Positions 856 to 62,145 of a DNA stretch of 64,000 bases are shown in pieces. The position numbers and the translations under genes are program-made. Under the pieces are notes generated by a model that saw nothing but the letters and a program-made list of their open reading frames with translations, had not been told where the DNA came from and made no database searches. The stretch is taken from positions 140,150 to 204,149 of IMG/VR virus record IMGVR_UViG_3300041402_000314. One strand, written 5' to 3'. Positions within the stretch are counted from its first letter, which is position 1, and every line of letters starts with the position of its first letter.

Positions 856-1498
856 GATAAATCTCAATGTTTTCGAAACCATATTTTTCTAATTCCTTGG
901 CATAGTCTTCAGCCTCATCCCTAGTCAACCCATATTTGTCTGGTCTTAGAGATATAGGATGATCACCAGTAACATACCATTTTTCTTTTCGGTCTTTGGC
1001 TTCGTGTATTACAAGATGGAAGTTCTGGGCATTAGTCTTAGCTCTTCGCTCACCATTACAGTATTTAGGGTCACAGTTACGCACAAACCAATCGGTTATC
1101 ATATCATAATCAACCATACGACTGATTGGATGCCAGAATAATACCTTGAGGTCATCTACAGTATTCCATAGAACAGAAATGTTTACAGGCATATCATTTA
1201 CTTCACCGACCTTTACCATCAGACCAGAATTATCCTGTACCCACTCATTTTTACGTTCCTGACAATCTTTCCATAGATAGAGACTTTCACAGCTATTGGC
1301 CTCAACCACAAAATCAGTTGTTTTGAATCGAGTATCTGAATGTTTAGTTAGGTCATATTCATTCACGTCTGACGGCTTTAAGGGAACTGCAATATGTCTG
1401 GGGTCTGTGTTGATATGAAACCATAGATTCCCATTATATCGAATTTTCTCTCCACAAGCAACACAAATAGCTTCTTCACCTTTTTTAGGGTCTTTCAT
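839..1498 (-). CDS. hypothetical protein with N-terminal CxxC
   Basis: 219 aa ORF in a tightly packed minus-strand operon. Confidence 0.75.
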   Translation of the reverse strand: MKDPKKGEEAICVACGEKIRYNGNLWFHINTDPRHIAVPLKPSDVNEYDLTKHSDTRFKTTDFVVEANSCESLYLWKDCQERKNEWVQDNSGLMVKVGEVNDMPVNISVLWNTVDDLKVLFWHPISRMVDYDMITDWFVRNCDPKYCNGERRAKTNAQNFHLVIHEAKDRKEKWYVTGDHPISLRPDKYGLTRDEAEDYAKELEKYGFENIEIYLDKKD

Positions 1499-1499
1499 C

Positions 1500-1715
1500 T
1501 TATTTCTCCCTCTGACTTTCTAATAGGTTTTCGAAATCGATCTGATAATTAGATAAATCAGTTAGGTCATATGGGTTTATAGGTACACCATGTCTATGAC
1601 TAGAAGTAACTCTATTTATCTTCCCTAACAATTTCTGAATACCCATCATCAACTCTTTATTTTTACAAGTATGTGTAAGGGATTCGCCTTTACAGCCTAG
1701 ACAAATTTCACTCAT
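1500..1715 (-). CDS. hypothetical protein
   Basis: 71 aa ORF, GGAGAG RBS, abuts neighbours. Confidence 0.65.
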   Translation of the reverse strand: MSEICLGCKGESLTHTCKNKELMMGIQKLLGKINRVTSSHRHGVPINPYDLTDLSNYQIDFENLLESQREK

Positions 1716-5713: not shown

Positions 5714-6058
5714 TTATGAAGTAATTCTACCAGCTTTCGAAGCGTCTTCAGCGTATATACTGAGAGGAAAGTTAAACGATGCGTACCTATCTCTTTCGAC
5801 ACCCAGACCAAATGGTGGGAATCTCATTGCTTCGAGTTCATCCCTAGAAACGTATCCTAACTCAGGGAACCCTTGCCCAAGATCACAGAGACCGAAGAAC
5901 ATTCTGCTCTCCTCGTCATATTCCGTAATTAACCATGTACATGCTCCGCCACCGAAAAACTTAACTACTGGTATGAAGTCAGACTCCCCACCAGACTCTT
6001 GATTGATCTTAGAGTTCCTAACCAGCTTATCTTCGATTATCTTAGTCATTAGTTTCAT
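5714..6058 (-). CDS. DUF2958-family protein
   Basis: PVVKFFxxGACTWLITE...FFGLCDLGxGFPELGYVSxxEL...GLGVERD signature. Confidence 0.85.
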   Translation of the reverse strand: MKLMTKIIEDKLVRNSKINQESGGESDFIPVVKFFGGGACTWLITEYDEESRMFFGLCDLGQGFPELGYVSRDELEAMRFPPFGLGVERDRYASFNFPLSIYAEDASKAGRITS

Positions 6059-14026: not shown

Positions 14027-14670
14027 TCCTCCACTTGTCTTAAAATTTCAATAGCAATTCCTTCTTTTTCCATACAGGTTGTTGCGCCTTCATTAGTTAC
14101 GATATGAGCGACATGACAATTTTCTCTAATCATTTCCTCTTTATCATTGGTAACAACCATATCACAGCCATTTTTATCTATAGATTCATACCCAAGATTA
14201 ACTAGCTCTCTATAAGACGCTCCTACCTCAAACTTAAACCCAACAAGGTAAGCTTCTGGATTCCATTTCTTTATATAGGAAATCACCTTTGGAGTCTTTC
14301 TGATATTATCTCTCATATAATCTATGAAAGCATCAGCATCATTAGACTTCACCTTAACAGGATTCTCTCTATTGAATGTGAAATCGGATACAGCCATAGC
14401 ATGGATAATAACATCAGCTTTGGGAACATATCTTTCCATTTTCTCCATAAGGTCTTTAGTGTCTTTAACATCAATAAACCATAGTCTTTCATCGTTATAA
14501 TACGGGTTTGGTAATATGGAATTTCTACCATGTATAAAAAATACATCATGTCCGTCTTTCAAAAATGTTTCAGCTATAATAGCACCTAATTTCCCTGTAC
14601 TGATATTAGTAAGGACTCGGACATCATCGATATATTCAGTTGTCCCACCAGATGTAATTAATATTTTCAT
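14014..14670 (-). CDS. coaB: phosphopantothenate-cysteine ligase (stand-alone CoaB)
   Basis: ILITSGGTTEYIDDVRVLTNISTGKLG, HAMAVSDF, LVGFKFE motifs. Confidence 0.9.
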   Translation of the reverse strand: MKILITSGGTTEYIDDVRVLTNISTGKLGAIIAETFLKDGHDVFFIHGRNSILPNPYYNDERLWFIDVKDTKDLMEKMERYVPKADVIIHAMAVSDFTFNRENPVKVKSNDADAFIDYMRDNIRKTPKVISYIKKWNPEAYLVGFKFEVGASYRELVNLGYESIDKNGCDMVVTNDKEEMIRENCHVAHIVTNEGATTCMEKEGIAIEILRQVEEWNR

Positions 14671-15227
14671 CGTTGCCTCGCTATGTCTATTAGGATTTGT
14701 GTAGGGTCTACCAGATAATCTGGTAGATGCTCACCAAGTTTCCAAGGTATACCAGTAGTCATATAGGATTTAAGAGCTAAGTGAAGCATAGTCGTAGGCC
14801 GACCCTTATCTGTTTTCAACACTCTTCTAACGTCACCTAGATATGTTCCAGTTACAACCCTATCTCCTATCTTTAACATCCTATCTATTTTTATTTCACC
14901 ATAACAGAATATACCAGACTCCCCTCTAATGTATATTCCTTCGGTCTCTTCCCACCAAGGACAATCAGCATTGGCTCCAGTGAAAGCCTCCATCAGAACT
15001 ACTGTACCGTCTTCAATAGAATATACTGGCGTATGCTCTGGACAATATAAATCTATTCCTTTATGGATATCATGTTTTCTATCGACTCCAAATGCGCCTA
15101 CATGACTATCTACAGGAATTTCTACCTCTTTCGTTATATCGATATCTTGGAAACTCATCGAATTTCCAGTAATACCCTTATATATCATATTTAGTGGAAA
15201 TGTCTTATTCATAAAACTCATCCTCAT
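14667..15227 (-). CDS. M23-family peptidase-like protein
   Basis: HKGIDL (HxxxD), PVYSIEDGTV, GDRVxTG; the HxH motif reads MLH. Confidence 0.75.
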   Translation of the reverse strand: MRMSFMNKTFPLNMIYKGITGNSMSFQDIDITKEVEIPVDSHVGAFGVDRKHDIHKGIDLYCPEHTPVYSIEDGTVVLMEAFTGANADCPWWEETEGIYIRGESGIFCYGEIKIDRMLKIGDRVVTGTYLGDVRRVLKTDKGRPTTMLHLALKSYMTTGIPWKLGEHLPDYLVDPTQILIDIARQR

Positions 15228-27193: not shown

Positions 27194-28438
27194 ATGGCAG
27201 AACATAAAATAACATATAAATTAAAGGGCATTAAACCGCCTTATGTTGGTGGAGAAATAGAAATTAATCCAACTGCGGTTGTTCAATTTTACTTCATAGA
27301 AAGTATAGAAAACATGTTTCTAACTGGTAAGATAGAAATAGAAGATATTGGAGGTCTCTTAGAAAAACTCCCATTGACAGGAGAAGAAACACTAGAAGTT
27401 ATTATAGAGCAAGACTTAAAAGGCGATACCGAAATAATTTCTCTAAAGACACTGGAATTTGAATTCTATAATATTGAATTGGGAATTACTGATAGAATTA
27501 AAACAACTAAGTATATATGTCATCTAGTGGAAAAAGGTTTTTTTGATTTTGTTAATAAGAGTTATAGTAAGTCGTATAAAGAGAAACACGTAAGCGATAT
27601 AGTTGAAGATATATGTAAAAATCAACTCGGTTTAGAAAGCGATCAATATGATGTAGAAGATACTTCAGATAAAGTAAATTTTATAATTCCGTATTGGAAA
27701 CCTCTTACTTCATTGAAATATTTTACGAGGATTGCAAGGAGAAAACAAAGCCCAACTGAAAGCGGTTATCTTTTTTACTCTACTACAGGCGATGAGGATA
27801 CTGAGAATCCTATCAAAAAATTCGTTTCTTTCGCTACTCTATTAGAAGTAAAACCAGATACAAGTGCAGAAAAAAAATATTACTTTAAGAAGAATAGTAT
27901 CAATCCTAATTTTATCAATAACTTTCAAGATGTTAAAAATCCTAATTTTAAGAATAGAAAGATACTGAAAGATGGTGTTTCTGGAAAGAAATATTACGGT
28001 GTGGATTTTGTAACTGATAAGACACTCTATACCGTTGAAAAGAAATATAGTGAATTTGTAGCCAGTGCTAAAATGTCTGGGAATGTATCATATCTTTCTA
28101 TTGGATTAGATGACGTGGATAGCGAAGTAGAATTTATGGGCTATCCAGATAGAAAATTAATAGAGGCACGACAAGATTTTAGATTTAGAATGTCTTTAGA
28201 GAGCTTTAATAAAAGAGAAGTTCTTGTTGATGGAGCATTGAATAGAAATTGCGGAAAGACCATATATGTCGAACAGGCAACCGATAATCCAGATGAGCTA
28301 CATAATGTCGAACATTCTGGTACATGGTTAATAAAAACTATTACTCATAGCTTCATGATAAAATCTTATGATCAGAAACTTGTAATATTAAAGGACGCTT
28401 ACGAGTCCACTGAAGTAGAAGGTCATGATAGTGTATAA
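27194..28438 (+). CDS. baseplate hub protein (gp27-like)
   Basis: ESI...FLTG.I...D, LPLTGEE, IPYW.P, YLFY, SG.WLI..ITH. Confidence 0.8.
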   Translation: MAEHKITYKLKGIKPPYVGGEIEINPTAVVQFYFIESIENMFLTGKIEIEDIGGLLEKLPLTGEETLEVIIEQDLKGDTEIISLKTLEFEFYNIELGITDRIKTTKYICHLVEKGFFDFVNKSYSKSYKEKHVSDIVEDICKNQLGLESDQYDVEDTSDKVNFIIPYWKPLTSLKYFTRIARRKQSPTESGYLFYSTTGDEDTENPIKKFVSFATLLEVKPDTSAEKKYYFKKNSINPNFINNFQDVKNPNFKNRKILKDGVSGKKYYGVDFVTDKTLYTVEKKYSEFVASAKMSGNVSYLSIGLDDVDSEVEFMGYPDRKLIEARQDFRFRMSLESFNKREVLVDGALNRNCGKTIYVEQATDNPDELHNVEHSGTWLIKTITHSFMIKSYDQKLVILKDAYESTEVEGHDSV

Positions 28439-56388: not shown

Positions 56389-58398
56389 TTAAAAGTTAAT
56401 TTTTATTGTACGGTTGAAACTTCCACCTACCTTACATAAAACATGACTCTTTTGTGTAGATGAGAATCCCAAACCGCTTAGTTGATCGTCTGATTTCTCG
56501 GTTTTCATCTTAGAACCAAGTACCTCAAATACTTTCCTGTGGTCTCTCAGTCCTTCATCAAGGAATTCATTAAAGAATCCTCTGGCCTTACTATCGTTTT
56601 TACATCCATCGAGGATAAAGAACCAGTGTTTGTTACCTGTCTTTTTTCCGTCCCAATGATTAGGTGAATTCATAATCATGGAAACTTTCCTGAATTTCTG
56701 GGTTGGTATATCCCATACTTCCTTAGATGCCTGAGTCGATGGTAATGACTTGATGAATTTGATTCCTGTCTTATGGGAATACTCGAAGGTAGCTACCGCC
56801 ACATTACTACGATTTGCTACTCTCTTATCGTAATGGAATGTATGGATAACACCATCAAATTCAATTTCGACATCAAAACCAACATCCTTTGTTTCTCTTT
56901 GAGAGTAGTTATTGACATAGATTTCATATTTACCCTCTTCCATCTTGGCTTTATTAGCCCATGTGATGTTTTCTACAGCACTTCTTGATGTACCAGAACC
57001 AGCATTCATATCAACATCTAGTTTTCCGCCTGTTGAATGTGAATGTTTACTACCATAATAAATGTGATTCCCATTAGGCTCTTTGCAGTGAATATCAAGG
57101 TCATCATGATTAAACCATGACAATGAAGCCCTGAGATCGCCAGTTACGTTTCCACCAGCTCTCTTCACACGTTCCTTGATGGAATCTGCGACTTCTCCAG
57201 TATAAGCCCATGAGAAGTTATTATCCCATTTGAAGATATGTTTAGAATCTTCATGTGCTGGAGCTATAAGACTCATCAAGTTATTAACTTGACTGTTTTC
57301 AAACATCAACTCGATACTATCAGCCTTTGGTAGTATTTTTTCAAAGAAAGTATCGGCATCAACCTCATCAACCTTCTTTAGACTCGCTGTTTTTACAGGC
57401 GCATCTTCTACCATTTCATCAAAGACATTCATTGCCTTTTTGACAGACCGATCAGCGAAGAGAACATTGGTAATTGAAATATCTTTTGCTACAGCATAAC
57501 GTCTCTGTAATGAATCACCGATACCAAGCTCTTCAACCTTCTTCTGAGCGTTTCTAATCATGGACTGAGTAACAAGAGCGGTAGTACGCTTATAATTGGT
57601 TGGAGCAACCTTTGATTCGAAGCTCTTCACTGCTTTATCAAGCTCCACACCGTCAGATATATCAGTCATCAATGTTCCGATTACAGAATTTCTCATCCTA
57701 GATGCGCCACCAAGAGTAGCAGAAGCAAGCCAACAATAGTTGTCCTTCTCTTCTTCATCTTCAATGGCATCGAATTTAGCCTTGTGAGTCTGGAGCAATT
57801 CTACAGTTGATTTATGCTCCTCTCCTCTATATATTGACTTCTGTTCAATAAGCTCAAGAACAGTTTCGATAGCTTCAGAAGAAATCTCTACTAAGCCACG
57901 CTTAAATACCTCTTTACCGCTGAAAGCTTTTGAAGTGGCTGTTCCGATATCAACTCCGCTCTTTACGAACTCCATTGGAAGTTCGATATAGAAATGTTCC
58001 CACTTTTTCAAACCGTTATCATTCATTTCATGGTTGAAGTCAGTTCCGACTTTTGACTCTCTATGAATGAAAATATTGCGTATTTTCGCAGATGTTACCA
58101 GTTCCGCCATCGCATCGGCAACAACTTGATAATGTCCACCTATCATAACATCCCAGATAGACACTTTCCTGTTATCGACAATAGCTACCATACTACCACA
58201 AGCCCTAATGAACTGCTTGCAACACTGGCAATCATGTTCGGTACGCTCACGTAAGATAGGATTACTACCTTCTGGAAAGCTATTAAGATAAGTATCCCAG
58301 ATAACATCTTTATCGATGTCAGTCTTGAATAACTTACCTCCTTTCATAGTTTTGAATTGTGCTTGTAGTGCTGTTTTGAACTTGTTAAAATCAGTCAT
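56389..58398 (-). CDS. conserved large-phage protein with YfaP/DUF2135-like domain
   Basis: HDCQCC..F; SLSW.N.DDLD.H..EP.G..IY...G.LDVD.N...VENI.W...G.Y...V.NY. Confidence 0.8.
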   Translation of the reverse strand: MTDFNKFKTALQAQFKTMKGGKLFKTDIDKDVIWDTYLNSFPEGSNPILRERTEHDCQCCKQFIRACGSMVAIVDNRKVSIWDVMIGGHYQVVADAMAELVTSAKIRNIFIHRESKVGTDFNHEMNDNGLKKWEHFYIELPMEFVKSGVDIGTATSKAFSGKEVFKRGLVEISSEAIETVLELIEQKSIYRGEEHKSTVELLQTHKAKFDAIEDEEEKDNYCWLASATLGGASRMRNSVIGTLMTDISDGVELDKAVKSFESKVAPTNYKRTTALVTQSMIRNAQKKVEELGIGDSLQRRYAVAKDISITNVLFADRSVKKAMNVFDEMVEDAPVKTASLKKVDEVDADTFFEKILPKADSIELMFENSQVNNLMSLIAPAHEDSKHIFKWDNNFSWAYTGEVADSIKERVKRAGGNVTGDLRASLSWFNHDDLDIHCKEPNGNHIYYGSKHSHSTGGKLDVDMNAGSGTSRSAVENITWANKAKMEEGKYEIYVNNYSQRETKDVGFDVEIEFDGVIHTFHYDKRVANRSNVAVATFEYSHKTGIKFIKSLPSTQASKEVWDIPTQKFRKVSMIMNSPNHWDGKKTGNKHWFFILDGCKNDSKARGFFNEFLDEGLRDHRKVFEVLGSKMKTEKSDDQLSGLGFSSTQKSHVLCKVGGSFNRTIKINF

Positions 58399-58429
58399 TT
58401 TTACTCCTCCCTTATACTTTATTCAAAAA

Positions 58430-58504
58430 TGGTGTAGTGAACTGGATTTGATACCAATATCGCCCAAGCTGGTGCAAGGGAGTTCTAACTTAAACTACCA
58501 CTAC
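58430..58504 (-). ncRNA. tRNA-like RNA 1 (degenerate anticodon arm)
   Basis: GUAGUGG/UCACUAC-A-CCA acceptor, GUUU/GAAC D stem, AUUGG-UAUCAAAU-CCAGU T arm. Confidence 0.75.
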
Positions 58505-58511
58505 AAATTTG

Positions 58512-58658
58512 TTTAACTGCTTATTGTGAGAGAGGGCTTCAACAACTGGTTACTAATCGAGGCTTTCACCAGTGAATCCTATTTGCACAAAGCCTCTATA
58601 GCGACTAAGACTTCAAGTGTTATATTCGTCTAACACTCTCTCCCAATAAATAGTTAAA
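58512..58658 (-). ncRNA. structured RNA A (long terminal stem, possible pseudoknot)
   Basis: ~23-bp imperfect terminal stem; AGUGUUA/UAACACU and GAGGCUUU/AAAGCCUC hairpins; ACUGGU/ACCAGU pairing. Confidence 0.6.
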
Positions 58659-58730
58659 TGGTGTGGGAAGTTGGACTTGATACCAACATCGCTCGGTATT
58701 CTCCGACATCTTAACTTAGACGACTCCCAC
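58659..58730 (-). ncRNA. tRNA-like RNA 2 (short anticodon arm)
   Basis: GUGGGAG/UUCCCAC-A-CCA acceptor, GUCU/AGAU D stem, UCGG-AGAAUA-CCGA, GUUGG-UAUCAAGU-CCAAC T arm. Confidence 0.75.
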
Positions 58731-58740
58731 ATAAAACTAA

Positions 58741-58872
58741 TGGATAGTTGGTTCGGAAGCTTTTTTGAATTATAATCCTCGCCAATAAACTCGGATTCGG
58801 CTTTCATTAATCACTTGGTATTCTACAGTCGTAACCGATTGAACCCTAAGTGTTTCCTCTTCCAACTACCCA
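58741..58872 (-). ncRNA. structured RNA B
   Basis: UGGGUAGUUGG/CCAACUAUCCA terminal stem; CACUU/AAGUG and AAUCC/GGAUU stems; follows promoter and boxA. Confidence 0.6.
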
Positions 58873-58881
58873 AATCAAATT

Positions 58882-58937
58882 TTTAAAGAACTTTTACTTT
58901 ATGATACTATTATAACAAATTCAGTTTCGTATGTCAA
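58882..58937 (-). promoter_or_regulatory. sigma70 promoter with boxA-like element
   Basis: TTGACA-17-TATAAT (58909-58937) then GTTCTTTAAA. Confidence 0.85.
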
Positions 58938-58951
58938 GCTTTATTTTAAAA

Positions 58952-59120
58952 TAATTAGTGGTGTGCTATTACGCCAAAGGGAACAGGGAACAGTAACCCA
59001 AATTTACGCCTCTATACTGTTTCTTCCTTGGAGGTTCGCTGTTACGGTACGCTTCTTAATACAACATAAGAACCCACTCTTTAAAAGATGGCTGCTTCCA
59101 AGCCAACCTCCCACTAATCA
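58952..59120 (-). ncRNA. 23S rRNA L11-binding domain (H43-H44) mimic with ~100-nt insertion
   Basis: GGAGGUUGGCUUGGAAGCAGCCAUCUUUUAAAGAGU ... GCGUAAUAGCACAC closed by AUUAGUGG/CCACUAAU. Confidence 0.85.
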
Positions 59121-59121
59121 A

Positions 59122-59186
59122 TTCAAAGAACTTTTATTACTTTTACTTTATGATACTATTATAACAAATTCGATTCTGGTTGTCAA
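59122..59186 (-). promoter_or_regulatory. sigma70 promoter with boxA-like element
   Basis: TTGACA-17-TATAAT (59158-59186) then GTTCTTTGAA; 32 nt identical to 58891-58922. Confidence 0.85.
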
Positions 59187-59194
59187 GTAAAATC

Positions 59195-60127
59195 TTATAA
59201 TAATTTTTCTATAGTTAATTTTCTATATTCATAGTAAGGAATTCGTATTAACCGTATATTATTATTTTTACAATATTCATCTTTTAATTTATCATTTTCT
59301 AGTTGTTTCAAAAATCTTTTTTGCCCACCAAAATATTTTATTGGTTTGTAATGCTGCTGTCCATCATACTCTATCATATGTGATATAGTATTACTACCAA
59401 AGATAGCAAAATCAAACATTAATTTCTTTTTATTTTTTAAATCTCCAAAAGAATATTGCGTTTCATATCTAATTTTATTTTCATCGAGAAGTTTTTTAAT
59501 CTTTTTTTCGCCCTTACTAAAATTACAATATATACACCCACGACTACGTAATGATCTTGCTTCCTTCTTCTCTCCACAATTTCCACATATGACACACTTA
59601 TACGCGATTGGCATGTTACCACTAATATATTCAGATGTCAATTCTATAGTATTGTTGTGTTCTATATTTATTTCTTCAAGAAACTGAGGATGCTTTTTTC
59701 TAACTTTTTTTGTCTGTGCTTCTCTACCACACTTAGAACAACCAAACCCCTGTTTTAAATATGTTGGCTTTGCTCTCCACGTGTGACGGCATATTTTACA
59801 CTTAATCTTTATATATTCATTACACCCCGTATAATCATCTATAAATTCTATCTTACTTTTTATATTATCGCCAAGTCTATCCATATATTTTTCGGTATCA
59901 AGATTCCATTTTACAGTATCTTTTGCTTTTTTTAATCCGCAAGCGGGACACCCACATCCTTTACTCTTGGTTAAAGTTGATGCAATAGGATTCCAAACAG
60001 TAGTACATTTGGTACACTTAACTTTTATTCTATCTCTACCTGTTACATATATTGTTAAAAACTTATAGATATTTCCATGAATTCTTATTACTTTTTGTTT
60101 AAATTCTTTATGTGTTAGCTTTCGCAT
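59195..60127 (-). CDS. free-standing endonuclease: three Zn-ribbon repeats plus Vsr/DUF559-like domain
   Basis: repeated Y......I..KCxxC...W.......GCxxC; SKGE, FDF, IEYDG.QHY, D..K..YC, LIRIPY. Confidence 0.85.
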   Translation of the reverse strand: MRKLTHKEFKQKVIRIHGNIYKFLTIYVTGRDRIKVKCTKCTTVWNPIASTLTKSKGCGCPACGLKKAKDTVKWNLDTEKYMDRLGDNIKSKIEFIDDYTGCNEYIKIKCKICRHTWRAKPTYLKQGFGCSKCGREAQTKKVRKKHPQFLEEINIEHNNTIELTSEYISGNMPIAYKCVICGNCGEKKEARSLRSRGCIYCNFSKGEKKIKKLLDENKIRYETQYSFGDLKNKKKLMFDFAIFGSNTISHMIEYDGQQHYKPIKYFGGQKRFLKQLENDKLKDEYCKNNNIRLIRIPYYEYRKLTIEKLL

Positions 60128-60181
60128 AGTTTAGATATCACAATCCATATTTTATTCTCTCCCTATCATTAACGGTTATTC

Positions 60182-60212
60182 TGAACAGTAACCTCCGACA
60201 CGTTACTGTTCA
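60182..60212. repeat. 11-bp inverted repeat upstream of the endonuclease gene
   Basis: TGAACAGTAAC-9nt-GTTACTGTTCA. Confidence 0.7.
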
Positions 60213-60258
60213 TTTTCTTTGTTAATTATGTATCTATAATGACATATGAGGTTTCTCC

Positions 60259-61242
60259 TTAAAATATTTTATCAATGAGTGTAGTAAGATAAGAGTCATC
60301 CAATTTCCAATCAGGCTCATCAGTTCTTTTCTTATCTATCGCACTAATCACTTCCGCAAAATATGCAGAATCGACACCCACTAGCTGATCTCTCAGAACT
60401 TCGACACTCTCTAAATCGAGTTTGCTTACTTGAAAACACATTTTAAAATACTGTCCAGCATTTATCTTCCATCCTCGTTGGATGAACTTTCTAGTTCGGA
60501 TGATAGAGGCTAGTGGGTATTTAGAACCGTTATATTTCAATTCCTTAGTGAGAGTACATTCCAAGGCATCTGCATTCACATGAACTTCCCTATCACTAGA
60601 CAACCAATAATTAGTACAATGAACGAAGTCATAGTTCTCATGTATCTCTTCAGGTTCACCATAAAAGCGTATAACGAGCTGTATATCATTACTTAAGGTG
60701 ATAGCATTGCTGGACAAGAATACTGGCCTGTATGCGTCTTCTGAGCCGTCTAACTGGTCTAATTCTTTAGCTCCAATATCATCTGCTTCAGAAATCATTA
60801 AGTCTGGAGTGGTTGCTAGAGTTTTCACTTTAGTATCTTCCAATACTTCAGTGGCAGCATCCAGATAATCGGTTCCTTTTTGTTGATCTAAGGTTTCGAA
60901 ATATCGATAAGTTCCTTCTTTATCGCCTTCACTAACCACACCAGCCGATTGAACTTTAATGGCTATTCTGCCGTTAGTATCCGTTACAAGAGCGGTCAAT
61001 TTATTGGGGTGTCTTTTAGCAAAATCTTTAGCATAATATTTCGCCACCTCTAAACATGTTTCTTTATTGGTGAAGTAATAATCATAGTCATTTACCTGTT
61101 CTCCCTGAAACATAGATACTATGGCTCCACCAGTGATGATAGAATTCTCATTTACGAGTCTTCTTACCTTCTCATCAGTAATCGAGGCTATAAATTCCTT
61201 ATGTTTTGCGAGAAGATTTTTCTCAATTCTTTTTCTATTCAT
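60259..61242 (-). CDS. Pol-beta-superfamily nucleotidyltransferase-like protein
   Basis: ITGGAI......VNDYDYYF, NAITL, QL, YDFVHC, R..KF..RG. Confidence 0.75.
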   Translation of the reverse strand: MNRKRIEKNLLAKHKEFIASITDEKVRRLVNENSIITGGAIVSMFQGEQVNDYDYYFTNKETCLEVAKYYAKDFAKRHPNKLTALVTDTNGRIAIKVQSAGVVSEGDKEGTYRYFETLDQQKGTDYLDAATEVLEDTKVKTLATTPDLMISEADDIGAKELDQLDGSEDAYRPVFLSSNAITLSNDIQLVIRFYGEPEEIHENYDFVHCTNYWLSSDREVHVNADALECTLTKELKYNGSKYPLASIIRTRKFIQRGWKINAGQYFKMCFQVSKLDLESVEVLRDQLVGVDSAYFAEVISAIDKKRTDEPDWKLDDSYLTTLIDKIF

Positions 61243-61254
61243 TCGTTAAACTCC

Positions 61255-62145
61255 TTAACTGTTATAATTTTCAATGACGTTTTGAATATCCTTCAGTGCT
61301 TGAGTAGCCTTATCAGGATTAACCACACATTTATCTAAAGAACCATAATACTCTTCAAGGCAGTTTAGAAGTAAATTCTTGATAGCTCCCTCATCAGGAG
61401 AATGGGGCAGCTTAGAATTAAGATACAAAGTTTCTAATTCAGCTTCTTTCTTTTGAAAATAATTTTTAATATCATCAATAGACCATTCGCCCTTTCTGAT
61501 GGCTTTCAACTGTTCTCGATTCCTTTCTAAATCTAAATCCCCTTCCATCATAATTTGTTCCACTTCTCCGAGAAGACGTGGAACGTGATAAGCAAATTTA
61601 GTGTCAAATCCATGACGGTCTACTAAATCCTTTCGCTTTCCTGCTTTGGGTTTTTTAATTTCCATTTTATGTAATTGACTATAACTATAACCTTTGAAGC
61701 GATGCCACGCTCCTTTATGAAGAAAATCCTTTCGTTTCTCTCTAATCATATTACCTATTTTAGTTGAATGTGTAATACATCTAATAGGGACGAAGAGAGC
61801 ATCTATAACATTAGGATTATTATCCATACAAAGTTGAAAGAACTTAATAATGGAAAAAACTTGAAAATCGTATTCCTTTTCTCCGTCTTGCGACTTCACA
61901 TGATGTTCTTGATAGGTGTCAAATCTTTTTATCTGCCTTCCGAAACCTTGAATTTCTCCATTGAGATGTGGAAAAATCATATCTTTATGTGGGATACATA
62001 CTCCGTATACATCTACATCAGAGGTATCATTAGAAACCCCATACGCAAAACTACCCATAATAACTTCATATACCATGCTATTAGGCAACCATTTAGGAGG
62101 ACTAATTAGTTTTTGTTTATCCAACTTTTGTACATAACTACTCAT
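61255..62145 (-). CDS. predicted nucleotidyltransferase (YcgL/RlaP-like)
   Basis: GS.AYG....SD.D..G, NNPN...L, GY...Q, G.DTK..YH..RL. Confidence 0.88.
   Translation of the reverse strand: MSSYVQKLDKQKLISPPKWLPNSMVYEVIMGSFAYGVSNDTSDVDVYGVCIPHKDMIFPHLNGEIQGFGRQIKRFDTYQEHHVKSQDGEKEYDFQVFSIIKFFQLCMDNNPNVIDALFVPIRCITHSTKIGNMIREKRKDFLHKGAWHRFKGYSYSQLHKMEIKKPKAGKRKDLVDRHGFDTKFAYHVPRLLGEVEQIMMEGDLDLERNREQLKAIRKGEWSIDDIKNYFQKKEAELETLYLNSKLPHSPDEGAIKNLLLNCLEEYYGSLDKCVVNPDKATQALKDIQNVIENYNS

Follow-up and report, generated by a model that had tools for sequence, protein, structure and literature searches.

The window analysed here, a stretch of 64,000 nucleotides, is the final 64 kb of a 204-kb phage record in IMG/VR (IMGVR_UViG_3300041402_000314; completeness estimate 89%) whose source DNA is from metagenomes of marine sediment and cold seeps. 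It contains two short tRNA-like genes, hereafter tL1 and tL2, in an unannotated gap of 796 nt (58399-59194) between an HNH-type homing-endonuclease gene and a gene encoding a 669-aa protein of the DUF8224 family. All genes around tL1 and tL2 are on the minus strand. Read in that direction, the order is promoter P1, an RNA gene that we call RNA1, promoter P2, a first structured RNA (module A), tL2, a second structured RNA (module B), tL1 and then the DUF8224 gene (Table 1). The locus thus described appears to be a compact array in which two consensus promoters serve four or five RNAs that lack annotation. Positions are those of the window unless prefixed by G000, which stands for the whole 204-kb record; L-numbers designate fetched loci or contigs.

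The acceptor stems of the two elements (GUAGUGG/UCACUAC in tL1 and GUGGGAG/UUCCCAC in tL2) have 7 of 7 pairs formed, each with a G7-U66 wobble, and are followed by discriminator A73 and an encoded CCA. The D arm combines a 4-bp stem with a 6-nt loop, AAGUUA, which is devoid of the GG dinucleotide (no G18G19). The segment GCGAU precedes the T arm in both elements, and the T arm itself consists of a 5-bp stem and an 8-nt loop of the form UAUCAARU (UAUCAAAU in tL1, UAUCAAGU in tL2); the 21-nt T-arm word common to tL1 and tL2 occurs 2 times in the window, against 0.01 expected. The anticodon arms differ: that of tL1 is CCC-UUGCACCAGCUU-GGG, with three G-C pairs, U.U mismatches and a loop of 8-12 nt, and that of tL2 is UCGG-AGAAUA-CCGA, with 4 bp and a 6-nt loop. 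In each case, the minimum free energy (MFE) structure computed with ViennaRNA is the cloverleaf (z-scores of -1.7 for tL1 and -3.1 for tL2). A preliminary description of this DNA had listed the acceptor stem, wobble, A-CCA end, D-loop, GCGAU segment and T-loop; each is present, on the minus strand, and the divergent, non-standard anticodon arms that it reported are there as well.

Both elements have the 7-bp acceptor stem, discriminator and 3' CCA of a canonical tRNA. Neither has a canonical anticodon arm (5-bp stem, 7-nt loop, U33 and a purine at position 37), nor a canonical elbow (G18G19 and a 7-nt T-loop with T54-Psi55-C56-R57-A58). ARAGORN called 0 tRNAs in the whole window with default settings, and Rfam at gathering score matched neither the tLs nor modules A and B nor RNA1. 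At E<=10, no tRNA or Y-RNA-type match was obtained within 57500-61500 and none for module A, module B or RNA1; the Rfam matches elsewhere in the window were chance-level CyaR and group II, and nothing more. With its threshold lowered to 80%, ARAGORN drew both cloverleaves, labelling tL1 'Trp(cca)' and tL2 'undetermined', with a two-base 'anticodon'; the anticodon stem drawn for tL1 reads C-G, C-G, U+G, U.U, G+U, and position 33 is an A. A search of the phage genome for antisense targets of the anticodon-arm loops returned chance 9-mers alone. Because the elbow is remodelled and there is no proper 7-nt loop with U33, the tLs appear unable to read codons and are probably outside translation. The loss of decoding suspected in the preliminary description agrees with this, as does the absence of any confident canonical call by the tRNA detectors.

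The local array is known from five close relatives. Relatives were taken as the contigs with the closest DUF8224 proteins (80-93% identity), namely L006, L007, L008 (also L009 and L050) and L049. Their layout comprises a promoter, module A, a tRNA-like element, optionally module B with tL1, optionally an extra tRNA-like element, and the gene. Orthologues of tL1 in L006 and L008 are 92-99% identical. Acceptor differences replace A3-U70 by G3-C70 and G7.U66 by G7-C66; the D arm, variable region and T arm are constant except for one T-loop base (A to G in L008), and in the anticodon-arm loop ACCAG gives way to AACCG, the adjacent proteins of the phages compared being 93% identical. The element that follows module A measures 72 nt in the window (tL2), 66 in L006, 75 in L007, 114 in L008 and 74 in L049. 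All these elements have a 7-bp acceptor stem starting with GUGG, a U at position -1 (U(-1)), A or G at position 73, CCA and a T stem. In L007 and L008, the counterpart of tL2 has the same acceptor stem and D arm, together with a D-loop AAUGUA, a 6-bp T stem and a 4-nt T-loop. The shared odd elbow of the preliminary description is therefore confirmed in part: tL1 orthologues and other phages (see below) keep the 8-nt T-loop, but the tL2 counterparts in L007 and L008 have tetraloop T-arms and, as these relatives indicate, this locus does not depend on the 8-nt elbow. In L008, two tLs follow one another in tandem, with nothing between them; in L049, module B is present without a following tL.

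Beyond these relatives, DUF8224 homologues at 40-74% identity (38 IMG/VR and 3 metagenome loci) have no such RNAs upstream, and ordinary tRNAs are found near the gene in 3 of these loci. A blastn search of the 821-nt region against 50,697 phage records detected no homologue of a tL or of a module in cultured phages; the 23S-like part (RNA1) alone was matched. In L006 and L008, we also observed that the slot of RNA1 is taken by another promoter-driven, irregular tRNA-like RNA. It has a canonical GG-containing D-loop, a TTCGAGT T-loop and a 6-bp 'anticodon' stem closed by a loop of 3-4 nt; its acceptor stem is imperfect and CCA is missing. That this slot holds a different RNA in L006 and L008 suggests that the RNA cluster is built from exchangeable cassettes.

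We built a covariance model, R1, from seven local elements, tL1 and tL2 among them. Across these seven, pairing in the acceptor, D and T helices reaches 97.3%, and 5 of 16 pairs are changed on both sides. None of 500 shuffles matched the observed pairing or covariation score, and slid controls were 36-53% paired. R1 scores tL1 at 86.7 bits (E ~1e-21) and tL2 at 79.1 bits (E ~1e-19), both being in the training set and the E-values being rough (short calibration). As a rough neutral yardstick we used the four-fold-degenerate sites of the adjacent DUF8224 gene, where identity is 0.85 between the window and L006, 0.79 between the window and L008, 0.76 between L006 and L008, 0.53-0.55 between the window and L007 or L049, and 0.47 between L007 and L008. 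Identity in tL1 is 0.92-0.99, versus 0.76-0.85 at silent sites; for the tL2-type elements of L007 and L008 it is 0.80, versus 0.47. The compensatory changes by which the fold had been said to be kept are thus recovered as covariation of the acceptor, D and T stems (97-98% paired here and in the wider set below), and random decay of the homologues is not seen: identity lies above that of silent sites and the stems are intact.

The odd T-loop also occurs away from this locus. The exact 21-nt tL word has 0 matches in IMG/VR, and the bare 14-nt T-arm word mostly gives chance matches there. Searching IMG/VR for the exact T-arm word with a CCA at the right distance, we obtained 51 viral loci, 7 of which contain a full cloverleaf at the word that is confirmed by R1 (35-46 bits); two of these, L098 and L194, score identically and may represent one element found twice. 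The acceptor-stem sequences of the seven outside members are unrelated. Their D-loops are short, mostly start with AAG and lack GG, and their anticodon loops measure 5, 5, 5, 7 (no U33) and 8 nt. ARAGORN was applied to six of these loci (all except L194) and called no class element. In L199, L204 and L207, the element lies between ordinary tRNA genes and is co-oriented with them. As a cellular control, one genome per bacterial or archaeal species was searched, which yielded at least 120 loci with the pattern; 80 were fetched, and 0 of these 80 had a cloverleaf at the word, whether by a rule-based filter or by R1. The homologue search proposed in the preliminary description thus finds the odd T-loop in recurrent cloverleaves of viral sequence (7/51 viral versus 0/80 cellular loci).

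When 18 elements from 12 loci are aligned to the model, the three helices are 97.9% paired and 14 of 16 pairs are changed on both sides, with none of 500 shuffles matching the observed values; this alignment is model-fitted and includes an ordinary tRNA-Trp of locus L207. The uniform T-loop of the class set arises by construction, because the search demanded the exact T-arm word. The elements found fit a proposed class with a cloverleaf ending in NCCA, a short, GG-less D-loop starting with AA, a non-standard anticodon loop and the T arm GG-UAUCRAAU-CC. To judge from these sequences, the odd elbow and the divergent anticodon arms go together in a genuine design that recurs beyond this single locus. 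The class escapes standard annotation (ARAGORN, Rfam), and the 8-nt T-loop word provides a practical search handle for further members. In searches of open-access literature on phage tRNA-like decoys, odd T-loops and a phage mimic of the ribosomal GTPase-associated centre (GAC), none of the present RNAs was found described.

The phage has its own set of 28 ordinary tRNA genes, located at G000 5-27 kb on a single strand; 26 of the 28 encode CCA, and all 28 have 7-nt T-loops of the TTCRAnT type. Within this cluster, R1 detects an uncalled element (47.7 bits) with a distinct acceptor stem and D arm, a rudimentary anticodon arm and the T-loop UAUCAAAU, and a further element at 29.9 bits. We also observed in this region another tRNA-like element that is not called by ARAGORN, and a tRNA with a CUA anticodon (amber-suppressor type; ARAGORN label 'Pyl') whose CCA is not encoded. 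Genes for RtcB and for a CCA-adding-type enzyme are found elsewhere in the phage genome. With 28 tRNAs, RtcB, the CCA-adding-type enzyme and an RNA-repair nucleotidyltransferase (RlaP), and with a peptidyl-tRNA hydrolase (PTH2) in relatives, the gene content indicates that the phage invests in tRNA upkeep.

Bacterial RNase P contacts U(-1), G1-C72 and R73-C74-C75 of its substrates. U(-1) is present in 11 of 12 tRNA-like elements and in 22 of the 28 real tRNAs of the phage, and the two groups have A/T-rich leaders of the AAATTT/ATATGT type in common, as well as similar trailers. Sequence features of the type seen in plant mitochondrial t-elements are found: U(-1), G1-C72, A/G73-CCA and a location at junctions of a predicted longer transcript without terminator. 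No terminator-like site was found between P2 and the DUF8224 gene, whose start codon lies 31 nt past the CCA of tL1 and is preceded by a strong ribosome-binding site. Among the functions considered in the preliminary description, 'processing modules' fits this anatomy best, with a single promoter, no terminator, a tL after each module, and U(-1)/G1-C72/RCCA signals, leaders and trailers like those of real tRNAs. Decoys of tRNA-modifying toxins and substrates of nucleotidyltransferases, also considered there, are candidate roles, RlaP and a second nucleotidyltransferase-like gene lying a short way upstream.

P1 and P2 together form a 40-nt repeat, and the same promoter cassette is found directly before a tRNA-Asp gene at G000 9956, and again at 27444. 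More generally, about 17 near-perfect TTGACA-N17-TATAAT promoters with extended -10 are scattered across the record, several of them in the tRNA region (examples in Table 1). This promoter set points to a host with a polymerase of the sigma-A/sigma-70 type and to a probable strong early transcription of RNA genes.

Table 1. Features discussed in the text (positions in the window, or in the sequence named by a prefix)
Feature	Position	Strand	Basis or remark
tL1, tRNA-like gene, probably non-decoding	58504..58430	minus	75 nt; sequence, MFE cloverleaf, covariance model
tL2, tRNA-like gene, probably non-decoding	58730..58659	minus	72 nt; sequence, MFE cloverleaf, covariance model
Module A, structured RNA of ~160 nt	58731..58890 (core ~58872..58741)	minus	Alignment and consensus fold
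Module B, structured RNA of ~150 nt	58505..58658	minus	Alignment and RNAalifold consensus
Promoter P2, TTGACA-17 nt-TATAAT, extended -10 TG	58909..58937	minus	12/12 match to consensus
Promoter P1, near-identical to P2, precedes RNA1	59158..59186	minus	12/12 match to consensus
RNA1, candidate mimic of the 23S rRNA GTPase-associated centre	58956..59116	minus	Similarity to 23S rRNA
DUF8224 gene (PF26675, phrog_1735), 669 aa	56389..58398	minus	Pfam and PHROG scans
HNH-type homing-endonuclease gene	59195-60127	minus	Pfam/PHROG scans
phrog_4400 nucleotidyltransferase-like gene	60259-61242	minus	PHROG scan
RlaP RNA-repair nucleotidyltransferase gene (PF10127)	61255-62145	minus	Pfam scan
Class members in this phage and relatives	tL1, tL2, G000 14862-14932, L049 315-388
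Class members elsewhere	L098, L118, L194, L199, L204, L207, L222		R1-confirmed
Uncalled element in tRNA cluster	G000 14862-14932 = L059 1501-1571	minus	R1, 47.7 bits
Further element	G000 14498-14585 = L059 1137-1224	minus	R1, 29.9 bits
tRNA-like element, not called by ARAGORN	about G000 14603-14690
tRNA with CUA anticodon	G000 5928-6001	minus	ARAGORN label 'Pyl'
Example promoter sites	G000 1094, 3680, 9956, 15955, 27444, 29744	minus	TTGACA-N17-TATAAT, near-perfect
Example promoter sites	G000 62618, 70529	plus	TTGACA-N17-TATAAT, near-perfect
Irregular tRNA-like RNA in the RNA1 slot	L006 5152-5236, L008 4455-4540
Upstream genes of relatives, including PTH2	L006 1681-5097, L007 2654-5145
Leader of DUF8224 relatives	L051 ~620-796, L052 ~1330-1536		Possible attenuator or riboswitch

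Module A starts just past the promoter and ends at the 5' end of tL2. In a five-phage alignment it is 75-93% identical, versus 47-85% at the silent sites of the neighbouring gene, and it folds to a consensus structure of 40 pairs, 4 of which show compensatory changes, closed by an 11-bp helix; it may also hold a GCC...GGC / AAUCC...GGAUU pseudoknot. A module A pattern had 0 matches in IMG/VR and 6 in JGI metagenomes, the latter being unrelated, mostly GC-rich sequences from which the rest of module A is absent. The ends of module B pair as a helix of ~20 bp, which places the 3' end of tL2 beside the 5' end of tL1. Module B is 82-90% identical with L006 and L008, and RNAalifold predicts 43 pairs, 3 with compensatory changes. 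Both modules are seen in this small phage clade only, and modules A, B and RNA1 have no paralogues within the genome. Because they are conserved and structured, modules A and B look like cargo, and they may be the real cargo of the array.

RNA1 has a different affinity. In its 5' half, a search over 5426 genomes identified 38 nt that match helix 43 in the 23S rRNA of E. coli at 89.5% identity; the loop of helix 44 (GCGUAAUAGC) reappears at its 3' end, a closing helix stands in place of helix 42, and the helix-44 strand carries a 91-nt insertion. Homologues are found in Pseudomonas phage pf16, in Aeromonas phage 4_4572 and at 10 IMG/VR loci, mostly in tRNA clusters; the Pseudomonas phages Astolliot and Milchi match by blastn alone. 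Closing helices covary in this family, and the inserts range from 75 to 294 nt. Judging by its sequence and predicted fold, RNA1 looks like a phage family mimicking the L11/GTPase-associated centre (helices 42-44).

The DUF8224 family has >6,700 homologues, with 40-65% identity across the fetched IMG/VR loci. In an AlphaFold2 (AF2) model of the protein (predicted local distance difference test, pLDDT, 82), the sole recognisable fold is a TerD/YfaP-like beta-sandwich at residues 411-556. We considered DUF8224 as a specific partner of the RNAs and rejected it, because homologues at 40-74% identity have no such RNAs upstream. Relatives at 70-74% identity in L051 and L052 have a promoter and a leader of ~170 nt, which runs into a terminator-like hairpin directly ahead of the ribosome-binding site; this leader may be an attenuator or a riboswitch. 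Upstream of the array, homologues of the phrog_4400 gene carry a precomputed Pfam match to Gad2, which our own Pfam scan did not reproduce. RlaP adds one or two nucleotides to damaged RNA 3' ends in tRNA repair (PMC12776372). Different homing endonucleases occupy one spot, HNH here and NUMOD3 in relatives, which suggests a hot spot of cassette exchange.

We interpret tL1 and tL2 as conserved, processed, non-decoding tRNA mimics, a reading to which we assign a probability of roughly 0.8. The layout of the P2 unit is as described above; its transcription, probably early, would start at P2 with the host RNA polymerase and produce a single precursor with module A, tL2, module B, tL1 and the DUF8224 mRNA. 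The tLs carry processing signals, at which RNase P would cut their 5' ends and 3' trimming would stop at CCA, giving CCA-ended RNAs of 72-75 nt. The same cuts would release modules A and B and give the DUF8224 mRNA a new 5' end. Mature tLs would keep the 'top half' of a tRNA (acceptor stem, T arm and CCA), with the elbow and anticodon loop altered. A mature tL most likely also acts in trans, by way of its acceptor/T-arm/CCA half, because members of the class recur in tRNA clusters of unrelated phages, and such clusters need no extra punctuation. In place of the acceptor/CCA end of tRNA, it could then engage, as competitor or decoy, a factor by which the 3' ends or top halves of tRNAs are bound or modified; a host toxin directed at tRNAs and a sensor of uncharged tRNA are candidate targets. 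We hold the whole chain, from transcription and processing to non-decoding and trans action, at slightly below even odds, and the trans-acting decoy step remains tentative, rather on the doubtful side.

Several observations weigh against this interpretation. The runs listed for this sequence are DNA metagenomes with no RNA run among them, so that tL expression and RNA ends are deduced from DNA, and the decoy step names candidate targets only. Constraint on tL1 rests on three close relatives; L006 and L008 are 99% identical in tL1 and 76% identical at silent sites, and an exchange of cassettes, of which the different homing endonucleases and different first cassettes among relatives are signs, could inflate the apparent constraint. 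The element after module A is swapped among relatives, with forms of 66 nt and 114 nt and with tetraloop T-arms. Because these bodies swap freely, as a processing handle would tolerate, the odd elbow does not seem essential at the locus. As for the wider class, the recurrence of a cloverleaf around the T-arm word is the only part that counts as evidence, the invariance of the T-loop being excluded.

These observations lead to the main rival, according to which the tLs are purely cis-acting punctuation: they would only guide RNase P and 3'-end cuts, and the excised tLs would be by-products. A single promoter, the lack of a terminator and the position of a tL behind each structured module are as expected under this hypothesis, as are the conserved, structured and hence cargo-like modules A and B. 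So is the pattern of invariance at the locus, where the acceptor stem, T stem, U(-1) and RCCA are retained and bodies are freely exchanged, tetraloop T-arms included. However, the 8-nt T-loop and the GG-less D-loop recur in tRNA clusters of unrelated phages, in which cleavage sites are already present, and the tandem tLs of L008 have nothing between them to release, while module B of L049 has no tL after it. Moreover, RNase P S-domain recognition favours the canonical tRNA elbow, so that a canonical elbow would be the better substrate. We regard punctuation alone as unlikely, yet as the most serious competitor of a trans-acting mimic.

Alternatively, the tLs may be dedicated substrates for phage enzymes (RlaP, phrog_4400, the CCA-adding-type enzyme or PTH2), or charged carriers for a non-ribosomal reaction. 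Non-proteinogenic tRNAs, such as those of cell-wall synthesis, likewise have an altered elbow that prevents their use by the ribosome. The gene neighbourhood is suggestive as well, with RlaP and a second nucleotidyltransferase-like gene just upstream, PTH2 in relatives, and the CCA-adding-type gene and RtcB elsewhere in the genome; RlaP works on RNA 3' ends (PMC12776372). However, class members elsewhere occur in ordinary tRNA clusters with no fixed protein neighbour, and the gene order is broken by different homing endonucleases among relatives. Nor do the tLs display a recognisable synthetase identity set: G3-U70, G-1/C73 and a long variable arm are all absent. This makes the substrate or carrier hypothesis improbable, clearly more so than punctuation. 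We also considered an ancestry and identity from tRNA-Glu (G1-U2 and the UC-GUCU D arm) or tRNA-His (GUGG), which was dropped because these resembling features are not class-wide.

That the tLs are decaying tRNA pseudogenes, leftovers of the large tRNA-gene region, might be expected in a phage with 28 tRNAs and several further tRNA-like remnants, and their D arms do resemble those of the phage's real tRNAs with the GG part deleted. This reading is nevertheless disfavoured and, in our opinion, very improbable: stems are 97-98% paired with many compensatory changes, identity is 0.80-0.99 versus 0.47-0.85 at four-fold sites, the CCA, U(-1) and promoter are intact, and the same non-canonical T-loop arose or persisted across many lineages. 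The Y-RNA-like reading of the preliminary description, namely YrlA-type RNAs that tether a Ro60 ring to a nuclease, draws on the tRNA-like domain of YrlA and its occurrence alongside RtcB-type repair genes (PMC4201824), RtcB being present in this phage, but it scarcely survives the absence of any TROVE/Ro60 (PF05731) match in the 204-kb record, estimated to be 89% complete (Deinococcus and Bacteroides controls were matched), the open, CCA-ended acceptor stem at the tL ends in place of a Ro-binding helix, and the lack of an Rfam match even at E<=10. Hardly more credible are working, unusual decoders, for instance tRNAs whose 8-nt anticodon loops read quadruplets or suppress frameshifts: an 8-nt loop can be drawn for tL1, low-threshold ARAGORN reads CCA and the phage also has a CUA suppressor tRNA, but the tL1 loop sequence varies among close relatives, its anticodon stem has U.U mismatches and no U33 follows, sister elements have 5- and 6-nt loops, and contacts on which the ribosome relies are missing from the T-loop and D-loop.

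If tL1 and tL2 are indeed non-decoding mimics, the view of phage tRNA genes may have to be extended. These genes are now mainly read as codon-usage helpers or as replacements for tRNAs cut by defences; a conserved non-decoding class would mean that phage tRNA clusters also hold RNAs with another job. The class keeps the features that are read by RNase P and by enzymes directed at the CCA end, together with a specific non-canonical elbow. As decoys or competitors, its members would be factors of counter-defence or host takeover that are made of RNA. Should punctuation be their sole role, the tLs would set the borders of modules A and B, and interest would shift to these two new structured RNAs. 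A bolder hypothesis, in our view an unlikely one, is that a hitherto undescribed, virus-specific family of CCA-ended non-decoding mimics with a remodelled elbow, carried by large phages, and the GAC mimic form joint RNA decoys of the translation apparatus. In that case, tLs and RNA1 would sequester host factors for which the 3' ends of tRNA and the base of the ribosomal stalk are objects of attack or sensing, for example tRNA-end-modifying toxins or the stringent-response machinery that depends on uncharged tRNA and L11.

Several known systems resemble parts of this arrangement. Plant mitochondrial t-elements are tRNA-shaped, non-decoding parts of longer transcripts at which RNase P and the 3' machinery are thought to cut, thereby fixing where neighbouring RNAs begin and end, and in T4-type phages stable RNAs lie within tRNA transcription units. 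The predicted layout of the tLs is similar, as they are embedded in a longer unit, with U(-1)/G1-C72/RCCA and no terminator. Unlike t-elements, however, the tLs are complete cloverleaves with an encoded CCA and a recurrent 8-nt T-loop, and the class also occurs where punctuation is needless. The mascRNA of MALAT1 and the vtRNAs of murine gammaherpesvirus 68 are tRNA-like, unaminoacylated, processed by RNases P and Z and CCA-bearing; both are linked on one precursor to other functional RNAs, and the vtRNAs are virus-encoded. They are eukaryotic Pol II/Pol III products with canonical T-loops, whereas the tLs are phage genes that lie behind a sigma-70 promoter, and their elbow is remodelled and their anticodon loops are shorter or larger than normal.

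Phage tRNAs can evade tRNA-cleaving defences, as do the T5 tRNAs that face PARIS or retron-type nucleases. Such tRNAs are, like the tLs, phage-encoded, located in tRNA clusters and plausibly selected by host attack on tRNAs. However, they decode, with point changes in the attacked loop; because the tLs cannot decode at all, they could only be decoys or competitors. In the cell, the non-proteinogenic tRNA-Gly of Staphylococcus is tRNA-shaped, with deviations that keep it off the ribosome. The tRNA-Other of Bacillus cereus (PMC3399842) is likewise tRNA-shaped and non-translational, and both come from Firmicutes-type systems. These cellular RNAs have normal 7-nt anticodon loops and are aminoacylated, whereas the tLs have loops of 5-8 nt and no recognisable identity set, and their class is found in viral sequence only. 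YrlA (PMC4201824), finally, is also a non-coding RNA with a tRNA-like module near RNA-repair genes, but it has a Ro60-binding end helix and a neighbouring Ro60 gene, neither of which is found for the tLs, and it keeps the canonical D/T-loop contacts that the tLs lack.

The likenesses to t-elements, mascRNA and vtRNAs concern mechanism, which the tLs would resemble by analogy. What sets the tLs apart from these systems, as far as the sequence comparisons extend, is the combination of phage genes, a specific 8-nt T-loop, shortened or enlarged anticodon loops and a distribution confined to viral sequence. Since the same odd design recurs in unrelated phages, the tLs are probably a virus-specific kind of non-decoding tRNA mimic.

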